Shown: one piece after another, positions 30,599 to 49,600 of the stretch
Layout: every line of letters begins with the position of its first letter
How positions within the stretch are numbered: position 1 is the stretch's first letter
DNA from: Oopsacas minuta
Lineage: Eukaryota; Animalia; Porifera
Assembly (NCBI GenBank): GCA_024704765.1
Contig: JAKMXF010000343.1
Coordinates: 62,001-126,000 of the forward strand
Direction of reading: 5' to 3'
DNA: 64,000 nt
Program-made: the position numbers and the translations under genes
The notes under the pieces: generated by a model
Databases searched by the model: none
Seen by the model: only the letters and a program-made list of their open reading frames with translations
Told to the model about the DNA's origin: nothing

Positions 30599-32430
30599 AT
30601 GGCGACACAATTTGATACTTCAAATTCCAATTCAAATGAAAAGGGCTCCTCATTTACATCTCCAACAAGAAGTAGTAGAACTACCACCATTGATGACAAG
30701 AGTCCTATTTGGAATCATTTGTTTTTTGCTGAAAAATTTGTTCCAAGTTTCCAATCGGTTGCTTACCCTGACAATTTTGAACCATATTCACTGAATGATC
30801 TACTCAATCTTAACGAATTACATAAATGTGGCCTTGATGATGTAAAGGAGTGGCTTGTAGCCATTTTTTCGCAAAATATGCCAATGTTGAACGGAGATCT
30901 GTTTAGATATGATAGACAAATTCTAGCCTTTAAGATTAAGAATATTCCCAACATTCAACATTTCCTATTCAACTCTGGAATCGGGGCATGCGGGATACTG
31001 GGAAAATTTCTGACGCCCCGATTCTGGATTTCAGTGTGGTATTGTGTCAAAATCACCATTTTCCGTATATATGTAGTTCATATTATGTCATACTATTGTT
31101 TCGTATTGCTAGTCAAACTATAACGTTATAATATTTCATTCTGCTACATATTGCTTATCCTGAACACCTCTCTAAAGTGAAAATTTCACCTACGTAGCAT
31201 TTATATTGTTTTATTCGATAGTTATTGCGAAAATAAAAGTTTCCTGAGTTGATTTCAGTATTGATGCCCCGGTTGCGTAGGGGATTTAGTATTAGTACTA
31301 TGCAAGCTGAAAGAATTAGATTTTCAGGGTTTGCCCCGATTCGAGAGGTTTCACTGTAGTTACAACCTATAATGTACATACGAGTTCCCTTAGGTATTCG
31401 AATTCTGTTATTAAGTTTACATACTGTATACAAACTTAATCCAATATGAAGTATAGTAACTGAAGTCAACTTTAGTATGAGGAGAATTATATAAAATGGG
31501 AAATTCTTTTGGACTGATATAAAATAAGGATGACAGGTTGAGAGAGGTACCCGTATCTTGGAGGTCCGACTGTAAAACCGAACCCAATTGTAACAATTGT
31601 AAAGCTTTTGTCACTAAAATCAATCTCCAATGTAAAGATTTACAGTTTCATGTTGTTTTGTAGATCTTGGCAAAGAAGTATTGTAAAGTAGACGCCAAGT
31701 TGAGTACTTGGCGCTGTCACATTGAGTAAGGTTATTCTTATACAAAATTTAATATTTAATGTTATGGTTAACTAAATAAACAATATTTTATTCGTTTAAA
31801 GATGTTTTATGGTCTGCTAAAATATATGAAATATCAAATTCTCCAATTGTTTGTATCTAGATTCGTACTACTAATATATTCCTCGATTGACTTGTTACAA
31901 GTATTTGTATGGTTTAATATGCTTAATATATAAATACATATAACACACTAAATACTCTACTGAAATTCAAACAATCACAGAAATGTGGCCTTGATGATGT
32001 AAAGGTGTGGCTTGTGCAAACTCCTTCGCAAAATATGCGAGAGTTGAACCCCGATCTGATTATATGTGATGAATTCAGAATATATGCGATTGCCTTGTTC
32101 TGATGATTAATCAGTTCCGATACTTATCTCTTTATTCCGATATCCAATAATTATGGATGTTAAGCAAGTAATTTTCGTTCGGAGTAACAAAATACTTCAA
32201 CCAGTCACCAGAATCCAATCAAAAAAAAAAATCGGGGCCTTAACCCCGATTTTTTTTTTGATTGGATTCTAGCTGTACCTGGCACTGAGAGAACACGCTG
32301 GTGATGTACTCTTCAACCTTGCTGGTCAGCTGATGTTTAATTGCACACATGATGGCCTTGAAAGTTTGAAAACCAATTCTAAATACGCTGCTTCATCTAC
32401 TGTACTCGAGGTCCTACGCCATCGATTTGA
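30599..32430 (+). pseudogene. Disrupted, scrambled paralog of the nuclease-kinase gene
   Basis: 30599-30945 is similar to the N-terminus of 32717-34312, 31595-31690 to its middle and 32275-32430 to its C-terminus. 31960-32070 re-duplicates the N-terminal part. Upstream 30390-30600 resembles 32515-32717. Confidence 0.75.
32210..32270. repeat. Near-perfect palindrome/hairpin with a 6-nt loop
   Basis: agaatccaatc(a)11tcgggg-ccttaa-ccccga(t)10gattggattct. Confidence 0.9.
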
Positions 32431-32716: not shown

Positions 32717-34312
32717 ATGGCAACAAAATTTCCTTCTTCAGACTCTGACTCCAAGGAAAAGGTTTCCTCAATTATATCTCCCACTTTGGGTAGTAGATGT
32801 TCTAGCATTGATGACAATAGCTCAATTTGGCAGCACTTTTTATTTGCTCAAACATTTGTCCCAAACCTCCGCTCGCTTTCTTATTCCAAATATTTGGATC
32901 ATTATTCACTGTTTGATCTCCTCGATCTTGATGAATCAGAGAAATGTCACCTTGATCATGTGAAGGACTGGCTTTTGGGCATTTTTCCGGATAATATGCC
33001 AGGTTTGAACAAAGATCTTATTAGTTGTGATCATCAAATACCAGCCTTCAATTATAAGACTAGCCCTAATATTAAACCATTTTATTACAATTTCAAGAAT
33101 CGACCAGATATATGCGTCAATTTTCATTACAAAAGTGTTGGCAGTATGCATAAGATTTATGAGGATATTGAATTTCCTGGTCTCCTCATAGAGGTAATGT
33201 CAGGTAAAAAGACGTTATCTCAAAACCTGTGTGATTGTCTGGTACTTATGATAGACCAATTCCGATTTGTATCCCTCTACTTCCAGATAACCAATATTTC
33301 TGGCTACTTGTTTCCCAAAGCCGACCACAAATGTAAGGCTTTGGTCACTAGAATCGATCTCCAATGGAAAGATTTACAATTTGATCTTAACTTTGTACAT
33401 CTTGGCAAAGAACAAGTCTCACAAGATGTCAAACAAGTACTCTCTGAACAGTGTTTTGGAGACAATCTTACATTGGTCAGTTCTCTTCCTCATTCAGCAT
33501 TTTTGAGGCTGTCTGATGCAGATTTAACTAACATCAGCAACCAGATTCAAAGTACATCAACACTTGAACAAATTTCTACTGGTTCTTCCATCATGTTCAG
33601 AAATAAAGAATTCTATTATAAGATTCTTCCCAATTATCAGCACGAAAGGGCTATATCTGGCATGTACATCTCATTCCTCGACTATCAAAGTTCAAATTCT
33701 GACTTGTTGAAATACTTTGTTCCTCCGAACCGCTTACTGAAGTTGGGTCCTGAAGCTAATATTCCATGTTATCGCTTTGAAAGGCAAACTTATGATCCTT
33801 TAAGCAGAAAGGAAGCGAAGAAATGTATCATAGATTTGATTTCACAATTAACTCATAGTCTTCAAGTTTTGCATGCTGAACTTTTCTTGGCACATCTTGA
33901 TGTGCGCCTACCAAATATATGTTTTGATGATGACGGCAATGCCCGTCTTATAGATTTCGACTTTTCACAATCAAGTAAATCTTCACGGATTTTTAGGAAG
34001 GAGTATCCATTTCTATACAATCCCCCCCGTAAGCGCACCAATGGTACTACTTGGACTTGTGGTGATCTTGATTTCAAACAATTGGGGGTGATGATTTTTT
34101 GCATTTACATTCCAGGCTATCACCAAACAACAGTCGAAGAAGAATCTGTCCGCGAGACATTGGACCTGAGTGGGAATGCTGGTGACGTACTCCTCAAATT
34201 TGCTCGTCAGCTGATCTTTAATTGTACACATAATGGAGTTGAAAGTTTGAAGTGCCATTCTAAATACGCAGCTTCATCAACTGTACTCGAGGTCCTGCAC
34301 AATCGAATTTAA
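32717..34312 (+). CDS. Intronless 531-aa protein: PD-(D/E)xK/Uma2-like nuclease-fold domain fused to a protein-kinase-like domain
   Basis: RPDICV...LLIEVMSG...MIDQFR (nuclease-fold pattern), then FYYKI, LAHLDVRLPNICFD (catalytic loop), RLIDFD and LDFKQLGVMI. Confidence 0.7.
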   Translation: MATKFPSSDSDSKEKVSSIISPTLGSRCSSIDDNSSIWQHFLFAQTFVPNLRSLSYSKYLDHYSLFDLLDLDESEKCHLDHVKDWLLGIFPDNMPGLNKDLISCDHQIPAFNYKTSPNIKPFYYNFKNRPDICVNFHYKSVGSMHKIYEDIEFPGLLIEVMSGKKTLSQNLCDCLVLMIDQFRFVSLYFQITNISGYLFPKADHKCKALVTRIDLQWKDLQFDLNFVHLGKEQVSQDVKQVLSEQCFGDNLTLVSSLPHSAFLRLSDADLTNISNQIQSTSTLEQISTGSSIMFRNKEFYYKILPNYQHERAISGMYISFLDYQSSNSDLLKYFVPPNRLLKLGPEANIPCYRFERQTYDPLSRKEAKKCIIDLISQLTHSLQVLHAELFLAHLDVRLPNICFDDDGNARLIDFDFSQSSKSSRIFRKEYPFLYNPPRKRTNGTTWTCGDLDFKQLGVMIFCIYIPGYHQTTVEEESVRETLDLSGNAGDVLLKFARQLIFNCTHNGVESLKCHSKYAASSTVLEVLHNRI

Positions 34313-37651: not shown

Positions 37652-40600
37652 ATGATTGCAGTAACTACTGCTGGGCTGGTAGCAACGCAGGATTTACAGA
37701 GTATATTAGTCAAACTTGAAGCTGTTGACTCAGGTATTATGTTATTATTTGTGTTTACTGTAACATAGTGCAACCTCATTAATACGCATCTCAGTATAAG
37801 ACGAAAACATATTTACACAAATCCTGTCCCTACAGGGCTTATTCAATCGGATTAAGCGTTCCTAGAGTTTTGTCCAGACAGTGTAGATAAGTAACTAATG
37901 AATGAACTCCACAATCATTGATTCTCACATTTGTCCCCTGAAACTTTATCTATAAGCCTATTAGGGTATCATTTCTATTTATAGTAACACTAGCTGAAGT
38001 AGCACATAGAGAATACCAACAGGCTCATTACGATAACTCAGAGAAAATCTGTAATGAGTTATGGAGAAGAGAGCCTGATAATACTGGATGTCTATTGCTA
38101 CTATCTTCTATACATTTTCAATGTAAAAGATATGACAAGTGAGTATTTGTAATACAATGCTCTGGTTAATCGGGTCACTTAACCAGAACATGCAAATGTG
38201 AATATTGTATTTCTCACTCTTTTCTCAAAACTGATCATCAATTTTGTAATAATATCTAGATTTGAAAATTTTATTATTTTACCCACTTCAACTACACATT
38301 CAGAGGCGTCAGCTAAGGCATCTCAAAATACTGAGTAGTACAGTAAGTCTCAAACCTTTTCCCCCGCAGACCCCCTAGGTTCAATTTTCCACGGAGTTTG
38401 AGAACCACTGGAGTAGCGAACTGGCTAATTCTGTAATCGTTTAATATCACAAAATTATCCAATATTTCTAATCACATATTATCCTTGTCTCTGTTTATGT
38501 GTTTTCTTCTTAAGACAATAAATATAGAATCTCCCTTTCCTCTTCATCACGTAACAGCTATCGCATCTTTTCCTAATTGATGTCTTAACCTTCATTCCTC
38601 TTGTCTGTGTTACCATGGATACCAACCCGGTCTGTTGGAATGTTTGAGGTCTGATTGAGAGATTTATTAGTTGTCTTAGAATTGTAAGTGCAGACATTTC
38701 ACTTGGAGGTATATATTAGCTAATAATATGACTCTAAACTAGGAAAATATTCGCGGAATTCGTGATATTTGAAGGTGATTATTCATATTCTAACACCCTT
38801 GGACGGGGGACCTAATATATAATGACATACTACATACCATGAATCATAGCATTCTATACATGAATCTATTCACAACTCCCCTAACGTGCTTCTGTGACGT
38901 TGAAAGATAAGTTATGTCCCAGTTTCCATAGTTACCTCGTTGGTATTTTGGTTACACCCCTCAGTGAGGGCCATTATTCAGAGGGAAATTAAGAATGGTT
39001 CACTCACAAACTCGCTACATTAATAAGTGATTTAGTTATAACTTGTATAATATTAATTATAATAGTAACTGTTTTTGATGATGATTCTTATTCCTCAAAC
39101 AGTAAACATACATTCTCCCGTTCTTCCTAATCCTCCTACAGTATCTGCATTTCCTTCTAACTTTCCATAGCAAAGTAGCATTGATAGATCTCTGAGTTAT
39201 ATAAGGAGTTGGTAGAGATATTTGAGGAGTTATGAGTGAGGTTATGTGAGGTTGAATTGTCTGTGTGAAGTGAGAGAGAATGCGTAGAGAATTCCGCAAC
39301 ATTTTAGCTATATTTTGAAATTTTGTTATTTCACAAACAAATACGCCACGTCCCCCCCGTATGCTGTTACGTATTTAACCATGGATGGCGGATTAGTTTA
39401 TCTGCTTGGATGTTAGTCAAGGTCAGTTTGAGGGCACTTCGTTATAACGAGAGTGTACTGTAAATCCACCAGCCATGGTTAGATAGTTAATAAGTATATA
39501 GAGAACGAATTCTCCTATTATTATAAGTAAGTATTAAGAATATACGAATAAACGACACATACACTACATTCCTATTACTCATACTGTATAACCAGTAATC
39601 CTCCTCTTTTGATAATGTTTAACTGGTTCCATAAAACACATCATATAAAGTCTCCCTCGCTTCTTCATCTGTCTACAATGCCTACATTTCTTCCTCAATT
39701 GAGTCACAAGTCTCGGGGTTTTCTGCCTGACTTGAGTTATGTTGACTGTTGGGAATAGATTAGCGTTCGTTAGTGTAAGAATGGAATGTTGATTTATATT
39801 GTAGAGTTTCGTGAATAAGCTACGGAGCTGTGATGTCATTCTATTTGCTATTTGTTAACATAATACGTAAATAAATTGTGTACTTTCTCTTCCAGCCTGG
39901 ACTAGATTGAAGTTACCCTATTCGTACTTACAACCATTAAAATTTCCCCGGATTTCCAAGTTTACATCCGCCATGCATAAATAGCAATTTTTAGCAAATT
40001 GTTGGCAATATCCCAATTAAGCGAGGTCTACTCCACTTTTTTTTAATAGAAAAAGGTGTGAGAATATGATTAATCATTTAATAAAACCTACAAATAATTA
40101 TCACTCTCTAATACTAGCTAATTACCCTACAATCCGATTGAATAACATTTCCCTCCTGAATTATGAACCCCACTAGCTCGGGGGCTAGAAACACTCCACT
40201 CGTACCAAACTTTATTCTTCCCAACCCGTCTCCAGAAATTGACCAAAACCCTATCTGCATATTCCACATACAGGGGCTGTCGTATAGGGAAATACATAGG
40301 GAACCAACTGAACATCCCTATAGAGTACGTAGTAGGGTGTATGCTTATTGTAATGTCTTTGTATAGATTACTACTGAAGTATCCTACAAAACCATGGATA
40401 ACAGAGTTCTGTGAGAATTCAAACTGGAGTTGTGTGTAGCGTTCATTCGAATTTTGTTGTAAATTGGGGTGTGTGAATGTGAATAACGGTTTGCAGGGTG
40501 CGGGGAGATACACGTTATGAAGATAGACTACATATGGGGTCTCGTATGGCGCTTCTGCCGGTTTTGACGGGTCGACACAATTCGCAAGGGCGTTGTACAA

Positions 40601-43600
40601 CTTCGTACTTGAGACTGGGGCTAGAAATGATGTATAGCTTGTTGGTATACTAATCGCATCCGGTTTTAACAGGTGTTGAGCTCCGTCTAGGCATTCCGGA
40701 GAGAGTTCGTTGTCACCAAATGAGCCTAACAACTCACTAACTATTATATCGGCCAATTCAGGTGGTGTCCATAGCCGCATATCTGATGACACTATGGTTA
40801 CTAAGCTGTTCCATTCTTTAATATTGAGATTACGTAGTGTGATAATTGCATTAGGATTCTTCTCTACTGCGAATATTTTGACAGAAATCCCTAGATACAT
40901 ATATGGTTAAATGGAATGTATACATCTTAACTCCCCACTTACCTGTGGCTTTACTCGCACTGATTGTACCTTTTACAAGTGGCCCTCTACCAGCCCCAAC
41001 TACCATGACAACAACATCTTTGCCTTGGTATGTCTCCCTTTCTTTGATGTCTAATAAAGCTTGCTTCACTGCCTCTTCATACCGCACGTATTTAACTGGG
41101 TCTTTCTCAAACATTTCATAAGTCTGGGACTCTAAATTGTCTTGTAACGGTTGTAACGGACACTGTAGGAAATCCTCATAGCCTCTAGCGAATTCTCTAA
41201 CCGGTGATTCATTGTCTCGTATACTCCAGAGATGTTGTAAATACTGTATGTATGTAGTTATACCCATTAGTTTATTAACGTGATTCGTACCTGTTAAAAT
41301 GCCTTGACAGTTTAGTTTGAAGAGGGAATTTATGACAGATTGTGTGGATTTGTTCAGTACAGGAAATCCTTTCTGGTTAGAAGAGAATGATTCTGTAGAG
41401 ACTGAGTATGCCTTCACAGGTTCTCCTGTCCATCTGTCTATAACCATTGCTTCTACACATCGAGTGCCTAGTAAATACAAATAGCATAAGTAGAAAATTA
41501 CAAAATTACATTGTGTGCCGACAGCTTAGTCTATTCATTACATTTTTGTTTCCAGAAGGTGTACGTCATTTCCGAGTTCTATTGCATAGTCAAATGGTCT
41601 AGCTACTACAACCATGTCCTTAATTCCTATTCCTATGTCATCCACAACTCACCTATCTCTAATACTACAGATATCTTCTTATTACACCCACAGAGTGCGT
41701 AGAACTTCGTCCACCATTCCCAGGGGTCTTCTCTTCCTACCTCTTCAATATTGAATGAATATTCCTTATTTAACGGATAAGTCAGAGGTACTTTAACCCA
41801 TACATGCTGGTTAGTTTGCTGTAGATAAGCTACTAGACTACTGGATAGGTTCTCACAGTCACTACTATTAAGCTCCACAAGTACTGCTGGTATTGATAAG
41901 TGTGTTGCATAGCTTAGTTCTTCATAGAATGCCTTTTCATGTGATTCTCTTACCTAATGAAATTGAGCGATATTTACACCAAGGGGTCAAGGGTATTGAA
42001 TTGGCCCGATGCAAATCAGGGGCTTCGATATATCCGTGTTGGATATAACGGAGTTAACTGTTTACCAATTACCCCAAACACTCGTAACGCTCATAGCTCG
42101 ATCCGGCATTGCAAATATTGTTACCTTCTTGCTTGAATGTTCCAAATTAATCCAAGATGATATCTTCCCTACAATCAGCTGATTCCAGTCATTAGTAGAC
42201 AGAGTTAGGTCCGATCTACTCATCGGTTCCTCCCTTTTATCAGCTGTGTTATCACAAACACCTCCTCGTACATACCTAGGTCCCGCCATATTGACACATA
42301 TAAAATCGAAACCTTGACCAGCTGATTCACTAAGAGCATCGTAGAGATGAGATGTGTAGAAGTAATCTCTACCACAGGAGAACTTTGCTTCTCTTGACAT
42401 GGCTATACCCCAAGGGGAAATAATTGCAATGGATGCAGGTTATTAATACCCTTGGGAGTAGCAATACATCCGGTGTTCTTATAACCAGCATGATAATTAT
42501 TTCGGCAGGTCATAATATGTCTGAAAAGCCGTACGTCTTGCAAAAACCGGGACGGTTATGTAATTTATTACCCCGGAATTAACATACTATGACATTCCTA
42601 AGCAACGAATTGATCACCATGATGAATTATTAGTAATGTTTGCTACTAATGCAAGTGGCAGTATATAACGAGTACTACAGAGTAATCTCTATAAACTGGG
42701 AAAAGGGGTAGCATTTTCGGCGTCCCGACCCTGGCAACCTGTTTGTCCAGTTATATATATATCTCTATAGATCAGCATCATTCAGTAGTCTAGCTATCAA
42801 GAAGAATCCTGGATTAGCCGAAGCTTACTCTAATCTAGGAAACGTTTATAAGGAGAAATCTCAGCTGACAGAGGCGTTAGAATGTTACCATTATGCTGTC
42901 AGACTTAAACCTGAATTTGTGGACGGTTATATTAATCTAGCTGCTGCAATGGTAGCTGCTGGCGACCTGGAGCAGGCTGTACAGGCTTACATAATGGCTC
43001 TACAGTATAATCCTGTGAGTATAGATTGTGTATTCCAGGGATGTTTAACTCAAAACAAAAGCCAAATACAAATGCAAATACGAATACGAATCATATCATA
43101 ATATCAAATTAAATAATACTCTATAGGATTTATACTGCGTCAGAAGTGATTTGGGTAATCTGCTCAAAGCTCTAGGCCGTCTAGAAGATGCTAAGGTTTG
43201 TTACGTAAATACCCGACAATGGCTGTCCTCAATAATCCAATATATTTATATATCTTATGTGTATAGAGCTGTTATACTAAAGCTATAGAGACAAGACCAG
43301 ATTTTGCAGTAGCCTGGAGTAATCTGGGTTGTGTGTTTAATAGTCAGGCAGAAATATGGTTAGCTATATACCATTTTGAGAAGGTAAGAGTAAGCACAAG
43401 GGATTCGGATGCTTAGTATATTTAAGATATGAATTGTAAGACGATGTTCGCATATAACAAGAGTAACTTTCTATCAAATTCAGGAAACGGATCGCGTTTC
43501 TCGAATATAAAATACTCGTGTTATGTAATTTCAGGAGCCCTGGCGGACACCTTAATGACTAACCAATGTCTCTGAAGACTTTGGCAGGATACGACTATAA

Positions 43601-46600
43601 TATTAAAATAATTAATATCCTTACAGGCTGTACTAATCGATCCTACATTCTTGGATGCATACATTAACCTCGGTAATGTATTGAAGGAAGCAAGGATATT
43701 TGACAGGTATGTGTAATACAAGTAATGCTACTCCCAAGGATGTTCTTATAACCAGCATACACTGTACTTATAGGATGGTACTCATATATGTAATTTAACG
43801 GTGATATGTATTTCTGTGTAGAGCTGTTTCTGCTTATATACGAGCACTCAATCTCAGTCCTAACAACGCTATTGTACATGGAAATCTTGCTTGTGTATAC
43901 TTCGAACAAGGGTGAGTACAAGAATTGTATCAATTGAATGTTTGTAGGTTTATTACTTGCCAATTGTCTCGATTTTGGAAGGTGTGTTTGCATATATTAG
44001 CACCCACGGACGGGGACTACATACCGTGAATCATAGCATTCTATACGTAAATCTATCCACCAACTCCCCTACCTTACTTCTGTGACATTGAAAGTTACTT
44101 ACTAATGGTATTTTAGACATTTGGAGTTAGCAGTAGATACATACAGAAGAGCTATAACATTACAACCACACTTCCCAGATGCTTATTGTAACCTCGCTAA
44201 TGCACTCAAAGAACAAGGAAAGGTAAGAAATACAAAATCCGTACGAATAAAAATAATGATACAGTGTAACCTACACAAGCAGGGAATTTCTGTAAACGGA
44301 GTGACAATAGAGCAAATTCTAGCCCCCCCATGCATGCAAATGAGCCTACACAAGTGAGGTAGCATTTTTCGACGTCCCTGTACTAATGAACAAGGCCCGC
44401 AGAAACCATGAGCACATATAAGCTTAATATATCTCATTATATGTTCCATATAAAGCAGAAATATCCGATAAACTAATAAATAATCTATAATAATCACATA
44501 GGATATGTATCAGGCCATCTATTCATCTTAGCTAATATCTGCATCATTACTTCATCAGCCCCAGCCCCAATACTCAACAGACGGACATCTAAATACAGTC
44601 TACTCACTTCCACTTCATCCGTATACCCCATGCCTCCCCAATACTGTAGACAGCTGTCCGCTACCCTCCGTGACAACGGCCCTGCTTTGAGTTTAGCCAT
44701 GGTAGCAAGGCGTGTGACGTCATTTCCGGAAATATACTCTTTCGTCGCTCGATACACTAACGATCTCAGAGCTTCTATCTCCGTCTGTAATTCACACAAT
44801 TTAAACTGTACAACCTGATTGGCTAATATTGGCCTACCGAATGCCTTCCTTTGATTGCAGTAATCAGCTGTTTCTGATATAATACATTCCATTGCTTTTA
44901 GCACGTTTGTAGATCCCCATAATCTCTCCTCTTGGAACTGCATCATCTGGTAGTAAAATCCTTTCCCTCTCTCCCCTATGACATTAGCTTGAGGGACGAT
45001 TACGTCATCAAAATGTATTAGCGCTGTATCTGACGAGTTATTGCCTATTTTAGTTATTTTCTTTTCGATATGAATTCCTTTGGTGTTCATTGGTAGACAA
45101 ATGAGTGATTTATTCTTGTACGGGTTTTTCTCGCCAGGCTCTGTAATTGCTAGACAACACATCCAGTCAGCCTGTGTCCCACTTGTGATCCACATTTTGC
45201 CACCTGTAATCACGAAATCGCTTCCTTTCTCACGTGCGGTTGTTTTTATACCGGCTACATCCGATCCGGCCCCTGGCTCACTAACACCTATACAAGCCAC
45301 GTAATCGCCGCGTATACTCGGTTCAAGGAATTCCTTTTTCAACTGTTCGTTGCCATGTTTCGCCAAAGCTGGCGTTGCCATGTCTGTCTGAACACCAATC
45401 GCCATTGGGACCCCTCCATTTTTGACATTCCCTAGGGTCTCTGCGATGGCCACGGAGTATGAGAAATCGAGTCCCAAACCTCCATTTTCTGTCGGTTTGG
45501 TAACGCCCAATAACCCGTGATTACCGAGATTCTTGAAAACCTCTTTCGCAGGGAAAATCCCTTTCTTCTCCCATTCCTTTACAAAAGGGTTAATATCACG
45601 TTCTATAATTTTGTTTAGCATTTCACTCATTTGATGATGTTGTTCTGTATAGAAGCCAGGGGCTGGAGATAGAGAGGTGGAGTATAAATAAGTCTGTGTT
45701 CTTATGTTTGTTGTTAGTAGACGGCGGATTGGAGCGAGTCTTGATAGCATCTTATATTATTTTTACTAAATTGGTATAAAGAGTAGACTCCAATTAATTA
45801 ACAGGGTCACCAGCAAGGTTTTATCCAGGATTTCTGGACAGACACTCTTTTTGGACGGAAACAAATTGTTCATGTGCTAATATAAGTCTCACGGTCGGCA
45901 CTTTGTGTCCTTCATGGATGCTGACCCTGGACTCACCGGTTAATCGTTCCAATTGGCCATAAATACCCTATTAAGCAGAGCCTACTGTATTGTTAACAAA
46001 TGGTTTGTTTATTTTGCTAAACTTTACATTATCTGCATATGTATTGCCTGGAGCATAGACTATGACTGGAGTCATCAATGATATCAATTACTAATCAAAA
46101 GAATATTCTCAGAAATTAATTCAATACTCGTAATGGTACGAGCATGGGCAAGGGCTTCTAGATGAACTCGCAGAATGGTGCGAACGGATGTACGGTCGGA
46201 CCGAGTACGTATATCATATCCCTATGATACATTTTTAGGTACAAGAAGCGGAAGAATGTTACTTCACAGCTCTACGTATGTGTAACACACATGCAGACAG
46301 TCTTAACAACCTAGCTAACATTAAGAGGGAACAAGGAAGTATTGACCAAGCAATGACTCTATATCTAAGAGCTTTAGAGGTTTATCCAGAATTTGCTGCG
46401 GCACATTCGAATCTAGCTAGCATACTACAGATGCAAGGGAAGCTACAGGAAGCATTGCAGCACTACAAGGAAGCTATCAGGTAAGTATATCCCATAGGTA
46501 GGATATACAGTAAACTCCCGCTATATCGCAGCTTAAGGGACCGCGATAATTACTTCGATATAGCCGATGATACTGTTTGGGAACACAATTTGTACGATTT

Positions 46601-49600
46601 CAGACTTTGATATAAACGGGTATTTGGATATTTTAGGATTTGACCGTTAAACCCTTCCCTTATAGAATACATCCTGGATTTGCAGATGCATACTCTAATA
46701 TGGGTAATACACTGAAGGAGATGCTAGATACTCAGGGAGCTATTCAGTGCTATTTGAGAGCTATTCAGATTAATCCAGCATTTGCTGAGGGGCACTCTCA
46801 TCTAGCTTCTATATACAAGGTATTTGAGTAAACAAATATACAGGCAAACAAACAAACAAACAATTATCAACCATCAAATTACACACCTCAATAATTGCAT
46901 AATATCCTATAGGATACAGGTAATGTAATGGAAGCTATCAAAAGCTATAGAATGGCTCTCAAACTTAAATCAGAATTTCCTGACGCGTATTGTAATCTCG
47001 TGCACTGCCTACAGGTAAAACTAACTACGTAATACTTCAAGGAAAATATTAGGAGACATATTGATAGTATAGTGGAATCTCAAAATAGGGTCTTCTAGAA
47101 GTGGACAACCCTCTCTACAAATGACAACGGCCCTCTACCCAATATGCTCATTGTTCGAACGTCCCACTGTATTATCAGTATGAAAGTGCTACAAATAAAT
47201 TCACCTTCCGTATTTGTTTATTAGATTGTTTGCGACTGGACAGACTATGAAAACAGATTATCAAAGCTAACAGACATTGTAAAGGATCAAGTCAGTAAGA
47301 ATAGACTCCCATCTGTACATCCTCATCACTCTATGCTATATCCTCTTACTCATAATTTAAGGAAAGCTATAGCAGTTAGGCATGCTGCTCTATGTCAAGA
47401 GAAAGTACGTTTAATATATTGTGGATGCCGGTTATAAGGACACCCTTGGGAGTAGCAATACATGTTTTACCAGTCGAAATATTCCAGAGGATGGTGCTAT
47501 ATCCGGTGTTCTTACAACTGTATCTACTGGAGGTATTTAGCAACGTTCTACTCCCTTTAGATAGCGATACTACACAAACCAACTTACGCACACAACAGAG
47601 ACAAGAATACAGGTTCCAGACTGAGGATAGGTTATGTGTCTTCAGATTTCTGTAATCATCCTACTTCTCATTTAATGCAGAGTATACCTGGATTCCATAG
47701 CAGAGACAAATATGAGGTGAGTGATAGCTATTGGAGAATATGAGTTTGTGTGCTTCCTTCTAGATCCAACTTGTATCATAATTATATAGACAACACATAA
47801 AATAACATATACTACGTATTTCAACTGGAGGGACGCCAAAAATGCAATCCAATTCCCCGTCTGTGGAGGTTACACAGATATTTACTATTTTTGTAATTAG
47901 ATATTCTGCTATGCTCTTACTCCAGATGATAACACATCATTCCGTAAGAAAATACTTCAAGAATCCGAGCATTTTATAGACTTATCACAGGTATAGTATC
48001 TTAATACAGTGTATGCTGGTTATAAGAATAACACATATGGAGTAGCAATACATGTTCTTATAACCGGCATCCACTATTTAAAATATCAAGATTTAGTAAA
48101 GTAACGCTGGAAATTGATTAATTCTTGCCCCCATGGTACGAATCCTATCATGCCATCTGTTATTCATGATAATAATATCCAATCAGATTCCAGACAATGG
48201 AGACGCAGCAGATAAGATCTACAAGGATGGAATACAGATTCTCATAAACATGAATGGTTATACTAAAGGAGCAAGAAATGAAATATTTGCATTGAAACCT
48301 GCTCCAATACAGGTACAGTGTATCCTCCACAAACGGGACGCCGAAAAAGCTACGCCGTTTCTGGGGTTGATTTATATGGGACTAGGAATTCGCTGAATTA
48401 ATTTTTACTGGGTTCAGAAATTCAACAGGCCCCGTTTATATAAAATTCCCCTATATTGTGTAGGTAATGTGGTTAGGATATCCAGGTACTAGTGGAGCTA
48501 ATTACATGGATTATATAGTAACAGATAGTATAACATCTCCAGCAGATTTAACTGATCAGTATTCTGAGAAACTAGCTTACATGCCTAATACCTTCTTTGT
48601 AGGAGATCACAGGTGAGAACTTAGAAGTACAGTTCGAGTAATCGGACGCGATAAGTACTAAAAGTACAACAAAGGAAAGTGAATATTCGTTCCGCATGTT
48701 GACTTGGTCTTAACTCCCAGAGAATTGTGAGATTAAGGTCCCGAACACTCCGTTATAGCTAGAGTTTACAATAATGATTATTTGATAGATATCCTCCGTC
48801 CTAATTATACTTCTATAAAAGGCAATTAGATTAATATCTATAAATAAACATCCACATAGTCACAATCTGAAAATTCTTAATCCAATTAGACAACTGATTC
48901 AATAAGCTCATGTCTATGCATGTGATGTATCTTATGATCATACTTAATGAGAGAAATATTAGGTCTCATTGGTGATGGTGATAGAATTTGAAATGGGTTG
49001 GAGTTTGAGAAAATAGATTACACAAGTCAATTGGATATTAGAACACTGACGAAATTCATTAAAAGGGGGCTGTAATTTGTACTTCATATCCGTTCCGTAT
49101 TAATACCTGGCTTATCCCATGATTTCACGTCTTATCGAGGGGAAATTTTTGGAAATCCGGGAGTTTTGCTATATTTCTAATAATTTAGGTAATAACGTGA
49201 AATATGGCAAGGGGCTAGCAAATATGCGAGATACACTGTATTTCAAACAGTGTACAGACAGTCAAATTTAAATATCCCACACGTGGATACAGCTCTTGGC
49301 AACCAGTCCTGACAGATGGGATATATAAGCATACATTATAATCATGTTATATAATAGATACATGTTTCCACACTTGCTTCTGGAAGGTTCAGGCACTGAC
49401 CAGACAGAAGAGATTAAAGTAATAGACTCACAAGCTGGAGTTATTCAGATTAATAATAAAGTACACTGGCCAATGCATGTGTCTATTATACAGACTATGA
49501 TGCAGAATAGTAAGATACAAGCTGGAGTTATACAGGTATGTAAATGTAGAGATATCAATACTGGGGGTAACAATATAGTCAACTCCTGTTATATCTAAGC

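Follow-up and report, generated by a model that had tools for sequence, protein, structure and literature searches.

Three tandem bL36-family genes, two of them strongly remodelled, are conserved at a nested locus of the glass sponge Oopsacas minuta

The ribosomal protein bL36 is among the smallest and most conserved of ribosomal proteins, and its place in the large subunit is close to the factor-binding region. In bacteria, the paralogs bL36A and bL36B alternate in one ribosomal pocket. This bacterial pair adds to ribosome heterogeneity (10.64898/2026.10.06.756942), and the title of PDB entry 6i7v names the 'Ribosomal protein paralogs bL31 and bL36'. In yeast, the mitochondrial form of the protein, bL36m, affects the assembly competence of mitochondrial translation products (Prestele et al. 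2009, as cited in PMC3942809). A pan-eukaryotic mitoribosome preprint gives duplications of bL12m, bS18m and other mitoribosomal proteins, and mentions none of bL36m (10.64898/2026.10.06.756942). Here, we describe three tandem bL36-type genes in a 64,000-nucleotide stretch of the genome of Oopsacas minuta (assembly GCA_024704765.1, contig JAKMXF010000343.1, positions 62,001 to 126,000 of the forward strand), which we refer to as the window and to which all coordinates belong unless another locus is named. A preliminary description of this DNA, made from its letters alone, had supposed that the host was a glass sponge, and the source of the window bears this out.

The three genes are short minus-strand open reading frames (ORFs) that we call c1 (38479-38697, 72 residues), c2 (39057-39302, 81 residues) and c3 (39579-39839, 86 residues). 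Each is intronless and encodes an acid-free, basic N-terminal extension followed by the zinc ribbon of bL36. In c1, which is a canonical bL36m, a presequence-like extension of 34 residues precedes an L36 domain of 38 residues that has MKVK at its start and HKQRQG at its end; c2 is a divergent bL36 paralog and c3 the most divergent one. ORF calls and alignment confirmed what the preliminary description had claimed about the position, strand and intronless state of the three ORFs, the spacing of their zinc ligands and the retention of all four ligands. In c1 and c2 the ligands are spaced as C-x2-C-x12-C-x5-H, and in c3 as C-x2-C-x12-C-x6-H, with the additional residue of c3 (CFMEPVKH) also present in the c3 ortholog of a second genome, described below. 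Read from the sequence, all three copies thus appear to carry the zinc ribbon that defines bL36 (C-x2-C-x12-C-x4/5-H), extended by this one residue in c3.

Alignment with canonical bL36m showed that c2 and c3 retain the R-K-K-C, K-x-G-R-x-Y-x-x-C and H-x-Q-(K/R) elements of the family, and between 13 and 15 Lys or Arg residues fall within the last 42-48 residues of each. The near-universal ends of L36, an MKV(R/K) start and a (K/R)HKQRQG end, are present in c1 and absent from both c2 and c3. In place of MKVK, c2 has INATLLWK, with a two-residue insertion before the first strand, and its C-terminus reads NHHQKQLLL; c3 has PRLVTQ at the start of the domain, and HYQKRR followed by a tail at its C-terminus. 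Between the two genomes, one 13-residue stretch is identical and CFMEPV(K/R)HYQK is nearly identical. Because the differences at the ends of c2 and c3 are conserved between the genomes, we regard them as selected features and not as signs of decay.

Searches with the Pfam profile Ribosomal_L36 (PF00444), whose gathering cut-off is 26.1 bits, placed c1 firmly in the family: it scored 55.8 bits over the full profile (positions 1-38) and its ortholog scored 53.9 bits, in line with the canonical status that the preliminary description had given to this copy. The three proteins also recognized each other in pairwise BLASTP comparisons, with E values of 2e-10 for c1 and c2, 1e-10 for c2 and c3 and 4e-7 for c1 and c3, and the alignment of c2 with c3 extended back into the presequence. 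At the DNA level, the copies had been said to share no obvious nucleotide similarity. This holds for most of their length, as their DNA does not align outside a 38-nt core, and fails for that core (the GR-x-Y...C part), which is 74% identical among the copies, with start-to-start spacings of 584 and 537 nt.

We then built a profile from four sequences, c2, c3 and the orthologs of both, and searched it against 1.84 billion representative proteins, which yielded 58 matches at E<=1e-3. The top match, and the sole close one, was an O. minuta gene model (P0001) that we discuss below. A further 14 matches that we looked at were all canonical eukaryotic proteins of bL36m type, with the pattern (presequence)-MKVRSSVKK-C-x2-C...HKQRQG and a best E value of 1.1e-7. 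Against all PDB sequences, every one of the 27 matches was a bL36 or bL36m chain (best 2.9e-7). This profile search found no c2- or c3-type protein from elsewhere among the 1.84 billion representatives, a word search with c3 found no word-sharing protein in a set of 5.8 billion proteins, an exact look-up of c1, c2 and c3 found none of them in a collection of 15 billion proteins, and scans of JGI metagenomes with the c2 and c3 profile and with a c3 profile found no relatives. Such absences from protein libraries are weak evidence, because short ORFs are often not called. Taken as a whole, the sequence comparisons support that c1, c2 and c3 are real paralogs of the bL36 family.

Scanning the whole assembly (61,460,524 bases in 365 contigs) in six frames with PF00444 returned c1, c2 and c3 together with two matches of 16-17 bits on other contigs. 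One of these (L004, 16.8 bits) is found among unrelated ORFs, and we took it for a chance match; the other (L005, 16.1 bits) lies within a frame of 204 residues. Tandem expansion was not seen for the other small mitoribosomal proteins searched for in this assembly, with one match for bL34 and one weak match each for bL32 and bL33; the bS18 family gave four dispersed matches. In one match to the Ribosomal_S18 family (G000:C41:81474-81620, plus strand, 58.4 bits) we noted an in-frame TGA, which could mark an intron boundary or reflect a pseudogene or a sequencing error.

Structure prediction agreed with the family assignment. AF2 models of c2 and c3 have a core with a pLDDT of about 87 (residues ~50-70) and disordered or helical N-termini, and in Foldseek searches of the PDB with both models the top ~40 hits were L36 chains, led by human and yeast mitoribosomal bL36m. 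The TM score on the target was 0.67-0.72 and the root-mean-square deviation ~2 Å over 31-32 columns; the E value was only ~0.03, because the domain is tiny (~30 residues). According to these models, c2 and c3 have the predicted L36 fold, a three-stranded sheet around the zinc site. The N-terminal extensions are also alike. In all six proteins, that is, c1, c2, c3 and their orthologs, the first 34-41 residues contain three or four Arg or Lys residues and no Asp or Glu. The extensions are rich in Ser, Thr, Leu and Arg, and have Q-x-R directly before the domain, as in fungal and plant bL36m; in c3, AF2 predicts a helix at residues 3-15. These features fit what would be expected of a mitochondrial presequence.

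A word search with c1 identified a related protein (P0002, 74 residues, 83% identical) in a second genome, the ENA assembly ERZ25072730, and we analyzed the 20 kb around it, on a contig of 1.96 Mb, as locus L006. The order of elements in L006 is PRMT5 exons, c3, c2, an array of 15-bp repeats, c1, and then OGT exon 1 on the other strand, which, apart from the array, is the order found in the window. Besides the c1 ortholog itself (P0002, L006:10001-10225, 83% identical), the locus contains orthologs of c2 (L006:7255-7497, 57% identical, E 2e-31) and c3 (L006:6584-6841, 59% identical, E 2e-35). The orthologs have the same start positions as their counterparts in O. minuta. Among the last aligned residues of c2 and its ortholog, 20/21 are identical. 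When the genomes were compared by blastn, the coding cores of c1, c2 and c3 aligned and the DNA between them did not.

We estimated nonsynonymous (pN) and synonymous (pS) substitutions by the Nei-Gojobori method from these two genomes only. For c1, pN was 0.138 and pS 0.631 (omega 0.11); for c2, pN was 0.262 and pS 0.669 (omega 0.19, bootstrap 0.08-0.42); and for c3, pN was 0.226 and pS 0.869, with omega computable in only 82/1000 bootstrap replicates, all of them <1. These pN and pS values are comparable to those of the neighbouring last exon of PRMT5 (pN 0.140, pS 0.756). The halves that encode the L36 domain had a pN of 0.08-0.11 and the presequence halves one of 0.2-0.4, which is the usual pattern for targeting sequences; for the c2 and c3 domains, a pN of 0.11 stands against a pS of 0.67-0.91. 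Since synonymous sites are saturated, the two genomes must be deeply diverged, and omega is only a rough measure. The combination of saturated pS with low pN argues that c1, c2 and c3 are all under purifying selection, and the comparison places both duplications before the split of the O. minuta and ERZ25072730 lineages. Two expectations of the preliminary description are thereby borne out: the duplications are old with ORFs kept intact, as all three genes are syntenic in ERZ25072730 at saturated pS, and copies 2 and 3 do not evolve neutrally by the dN/dS comparison that it had proposed. We conclude with high confidence that c2 and c3 are functional, conserved paralogs.

Two features of L006 are recorded here as separate observations. 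The array between the c2 and c1 orthologs (L006:7689-9849) spans 2.2 kb, in which a 15-bp unit recurs about 144 times (89% matches), and was taken by a gene caller as a protein of 770 residues; no array of this kind occurs at the corresponding place in the window. Directly after the c3 stop codon of the window, 14 nt on the minus strand (39565-39578, GTAATAGGAATGTA) are near-identical to a sequence downstream of the c3 ortholog in L006. The c3 stop codons of the two genomes are not at aligned positions, and the 14-nt stretch may be an element of the 3' untranslated region or the remnant of a longer frame.

From these data, we propose that hexactinellid sponges may have a conserved three-gene nuclear family of mitochondrially targeted bL36-type zinc-ribbon proteins. 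In this scheme, c1 would serve as the standard bL36m of the large mitoribosomal subunit, and c2 and c3 stem from old tandem duplications and have since been kept by purifying selection. Both divergent proteins still have the basic, acid-free extension that resembles a presequence, all four zinc ligands and a basic core, together with conserved N- and C-terminal ends of their own. They would be imported into mitochondria, would bind RNA and, on the analogy of bacterial bL36A and bL36B, could act as small rRNA-binding mitoribosome proteins alongside or instead of c1, resulting in mitoribosomes of mixed composition. To this explanation as a whole, a conserved bL36m family in which c2 and c3 are alternative mitoribosome subunits, we assign an even chance. 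Several results weigh against it. Scored alone, c2 (23.7 bits, ortholog 24.3) and c3 (16.9 bits, ortholog 18.2) both fall under the PF00444 cut-off, so that the profile check suggested in the preliminary description was passed by c1, and by the c2 and c3 profile in that it matched only bL36, and failed by the two divergent copies taken singly. The altered ends of c2 and c3 are kept in both genomes and could mean another binding partner. The alignment behind the AF2 models was rich in L36 sequences, which makes the fold match not independent of the sequence evidence. Finally, the selection analysis covers two species only and has saturated synonymous sites, leaving omega rough and, for c3, computable in few replicates.

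The public annotation of the locus offers a different account of c1 and c2. The O. minuta model P0001 (120 residues, 'Mitochondrial/chloroplast ribosomal protein L36 [Oopsacas minuta]') joins residues 1-64 of c2 to c1 from residue 17, which implies a minus-strand intron at 38651-39111 with a GTATGT donor inside c2 and a CAG acceptor inside c1; the public protein sets that we searched do not contain c3. If this annotation were right, c2 and c1 would be two exons of one gene and the locus would not encode three proteins. The existence of P0001 in both NCBI and UniRef, its GTATGT donor and CAG acceptor and the RNA-seq hints that went into the annotation pipeline speak for it. However, the splice would lose Cys3 and His of the c2 zinc ribbon, and the stretch lost includes the last aligned residues of c2, almost all identical between the genomes, within a blastn block that is 81% identical (39185-39069). 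The GT and AG are also forced by Met-Tyr and Ile-Arg codons, in L006 the two ORFs are separated by the 2.2-kb array of 15-bp repeats, and predictors of the AUGUSTUS type tend to fuse short genes that lie close together. We therefore think it very unlikely that the annotation is right; because the splice removes half of the c2 zinc ribbon, which is the best conserved part of c2, P0001 is probably a merging artefact of the BRAKER/AUGUSTUS annotation. A reading of c2 and c3 as pseudogenes, decaying or neutral with ORFs open by chance, could draw on their scores under the Pfam cut-off and on the lack of any annotation for c3, but has hardly any probability left: neither ORF is interrupted in the second genome, whose synonymous sites are saturated; there the start is unchanged and the stop nearly so, the flanking DNA is unalignable, the domains show the low pN given above and not one computable bootstrap replicate reaches an omega of 1. 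Only slightly less improbable is a role for c2 and c3 as cationic zinc peptides, secreted or cytosolic and perhaps antimicrobial, that have nothing to do with mitochondria. The two proteins are indeed small and very basic, but they share with c1 and other eukaryotic bL36m the acid-free, Ser/Thr/Arg-rich extension that ends in Q-x-R, and none of the N-termini has a hydrophobic core like that of a signal peptide. The cationic-peptide reading that the preliminary description had put forward is not supported.

A more serious alternative is that c2 and c3 are neofunctionalised, that is, imported into mitochondria but acting outside the bL36 pocket, at a new site of the mitoribosome, on another mitochondrial RNA or as an assembly factor. 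In c2 and c3, the L36 termini with the strongest conservation in all of life (MKVR... and ...HKQRQG) have been replaced, and the replacements are kept in both genomes; moreover, all three lineages were kept in both species, so none is redundant, and the mammalian MRPS18 paralogs mL66 and mS40 provide a precedent (preprint 10.64898/2026.10.06.756942). Yet altered ends and a C-terminal extension are also seen in E. coli bL36B, and both bacterial types are treated as alternative components of the ribosome (10.64898/2026.10.06.756942). In addition, c2 and c3 retain the basic core and the zinc site, which provide most of the surface in contact with rRNA, and no new partner can be named. We consider neofunctionalisation outside the pocket unlikely on balance. 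That c2 and c3 use the same pocket as c1, by analogy with the bacterial pair, is a tentative proposal to which we give somewhat less than an even chance. Because the core surface is retained, we lean slightly toward this bL36-pocket reading, and the data do not decide the matter.

A connection between the bL36 genes and translational frameshifting had also been raised in the preliminary description. The part of this argument that stands is that +1 frameshifting is documented in mitochondria of other hexactinellids (PMC2267718). In the mitochondrial genome of O. minuta, +1 frameshifting was not observed (PMC4520895), which weakens the argument. A strict functional link of the triplet to +1 frameshifting is unlikely, because O. 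minuta, a species reported to lack such frameshifts, has all three genes and keeps them under constraint.

We next describe the surroundings of the three genes, in a window with a G+C content of ~36-38%. PRMT5 lies upstream of the cluster, on its strand. The last PRMT5 exon (40127-40900, minus) matches PF17286 (PRMT5_C) with 189 bits and PF05185 with 115 bits; its stop lies 288 nt ahead of the c3 start codon, and the remaining PRMT5 exons reach to about 42400 on the minus strand. On the downstream side, c1 is adjoined by the first coding exon of OGT, a TPR exon on the opposite strand (37966-38151, plus), which was identified by tblastn with the exon-1 ORF of L006 (79% identity, E 1.3e-32) and has a weak TPR_19 match. 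The next OGT TPR exon lies at about 42766-43101 (plus), with a conserved block at 42766-43024 and an ORF at 42919-43101 that has TPR matches. A further TPR match marks an exon at 44121 (plus), and domain matches place the Glyco_transf_41 (GT41) exons of OGT at 48133 and 50372 (plus). OGT and PRMT5 exons were treated singly. Consistent with exon homology, intron 1 of OGT (about 38152-42765) would contain c1, c2 and c3 as well as the whole of PRMT5, all of them antisense, and the flanking TPR exons agree with the earlier claim that the cluster lies inside an OGT intron. The O. minuta genome has 365 scaffolds, ~61 Mb and 36% G+C (PMC10280926; 61.46 Mb in PMC10282587). Gene nesting is common in glass sponges, with about 12% of the genes of A. 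vastus nested (PMC10282587). As nested genes are ordinary in these animals, the location of the cluster is unremarkable.

The same host gene has a further nested gene, an intronless gene for an acyl-CoA dehydrogenase (418 residues, 44494-45750, minus strand) that is antisense in a later OGT intron. OGT thus holds at least five nested genes: c1, c2, c3, PRMT5 and the acyl-CoA dehydrogenase gene. We also considered expression of the cluster by trans-splicing or as an operon. A. vastus has spliced leaders (PMC10282587), and in the window an AG occurs 1-15 nt upstream of each ATG; such a dinucleotide carries no weight in AT-rich DNA, and this candidate was dropped. Elsewhere in the window, two plus-strand ORFs (30599-31123 and 32717-34312) have similar N-termini (MATQFDTSNSNSNEKGSSFTSPT... 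and MATKFPSSDSDSKEKVSSIISPT..., respectively). The former is far shorter, with 174 residues versus 531, and the two may be tandem duplicates of which one copy is truncated or spliced.

The results reveal an ancient, lineage-specific, three-member bL36m family in an animal that is mis-annotated in public databases. The public O. minuta annotation is wrong at this locus, and sponge annotations easily lose short nested genes of this kind. The retention of one canonical copy and two heavily altered ones over a very long time makes this animal lineage a natural experiment in mitoribosome heterogeneity, and three peptides of ~40 residues make a small and tractable target for proteomics or cryo-EM. 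It is conceivable, though we regard it as doubtful, that hexactinellids evolved two lineage-specific mitoribosomal proteins from bL36m, which would occupy new sites or define distinct mitoribosome populations near the GTPase-associated centre. If so, either outcome would be a case of mitoribosome specialisation based on bL36m paralogs in an animal, for which we found no earlier report in a small sample of the literature.

The closest known relatives of these proteins are the eukaryotic bL36m proteins, MRPL36 of mammals and Rtc6/Mrpl36 of yeast. With its putative presequence and 38-residue zinc ribbon, c1 is a full match to them, and c2 and c3 resemble them in overall architecture, in the zinc ligands and basic core, and in the fold predicted for them. 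The sponge locus differs from eukaryotic bL36m in having three tandem genes, two of which, c2 and c3, are without the MKV(R/K) start and the KQRQG end, with two additional N-terminal residues in c2 and one additional residue in the Cys3-His loop of c3.

The bacterial bL36A/bL36B pair (rpmJ/ykgO; C+ and C- types) resembles the sponge family in that one genome likewise has L36 paralogs, one of them altered at its ends and extended at the C-terminus. Bacteria use their pair as a zinc-sparing switch, one member having lost its Cys ligands, whereas all sponge copies and their orthologs keep C-C-C-H; because the ligands are kept in all three copies, zinc economy is not the logic of this family. The four-residue insertion of the bacterial c-type is absent from all sponge copies, and all three look p-type, like other bL36m. 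A third comparison is with the mammalian MRPS18 paralogs (bS18m, mS40 and mL66), where a small protein of bacterial type is likewise present as three nuclear paralogs, all of them mitoribosomal in mammals (10.64898/2026.10.06.756942). The MRPS18 paralogs are dispersed and occupy three different sites, whereas the sponge genes c1, c2 and c3 lie in tandem.

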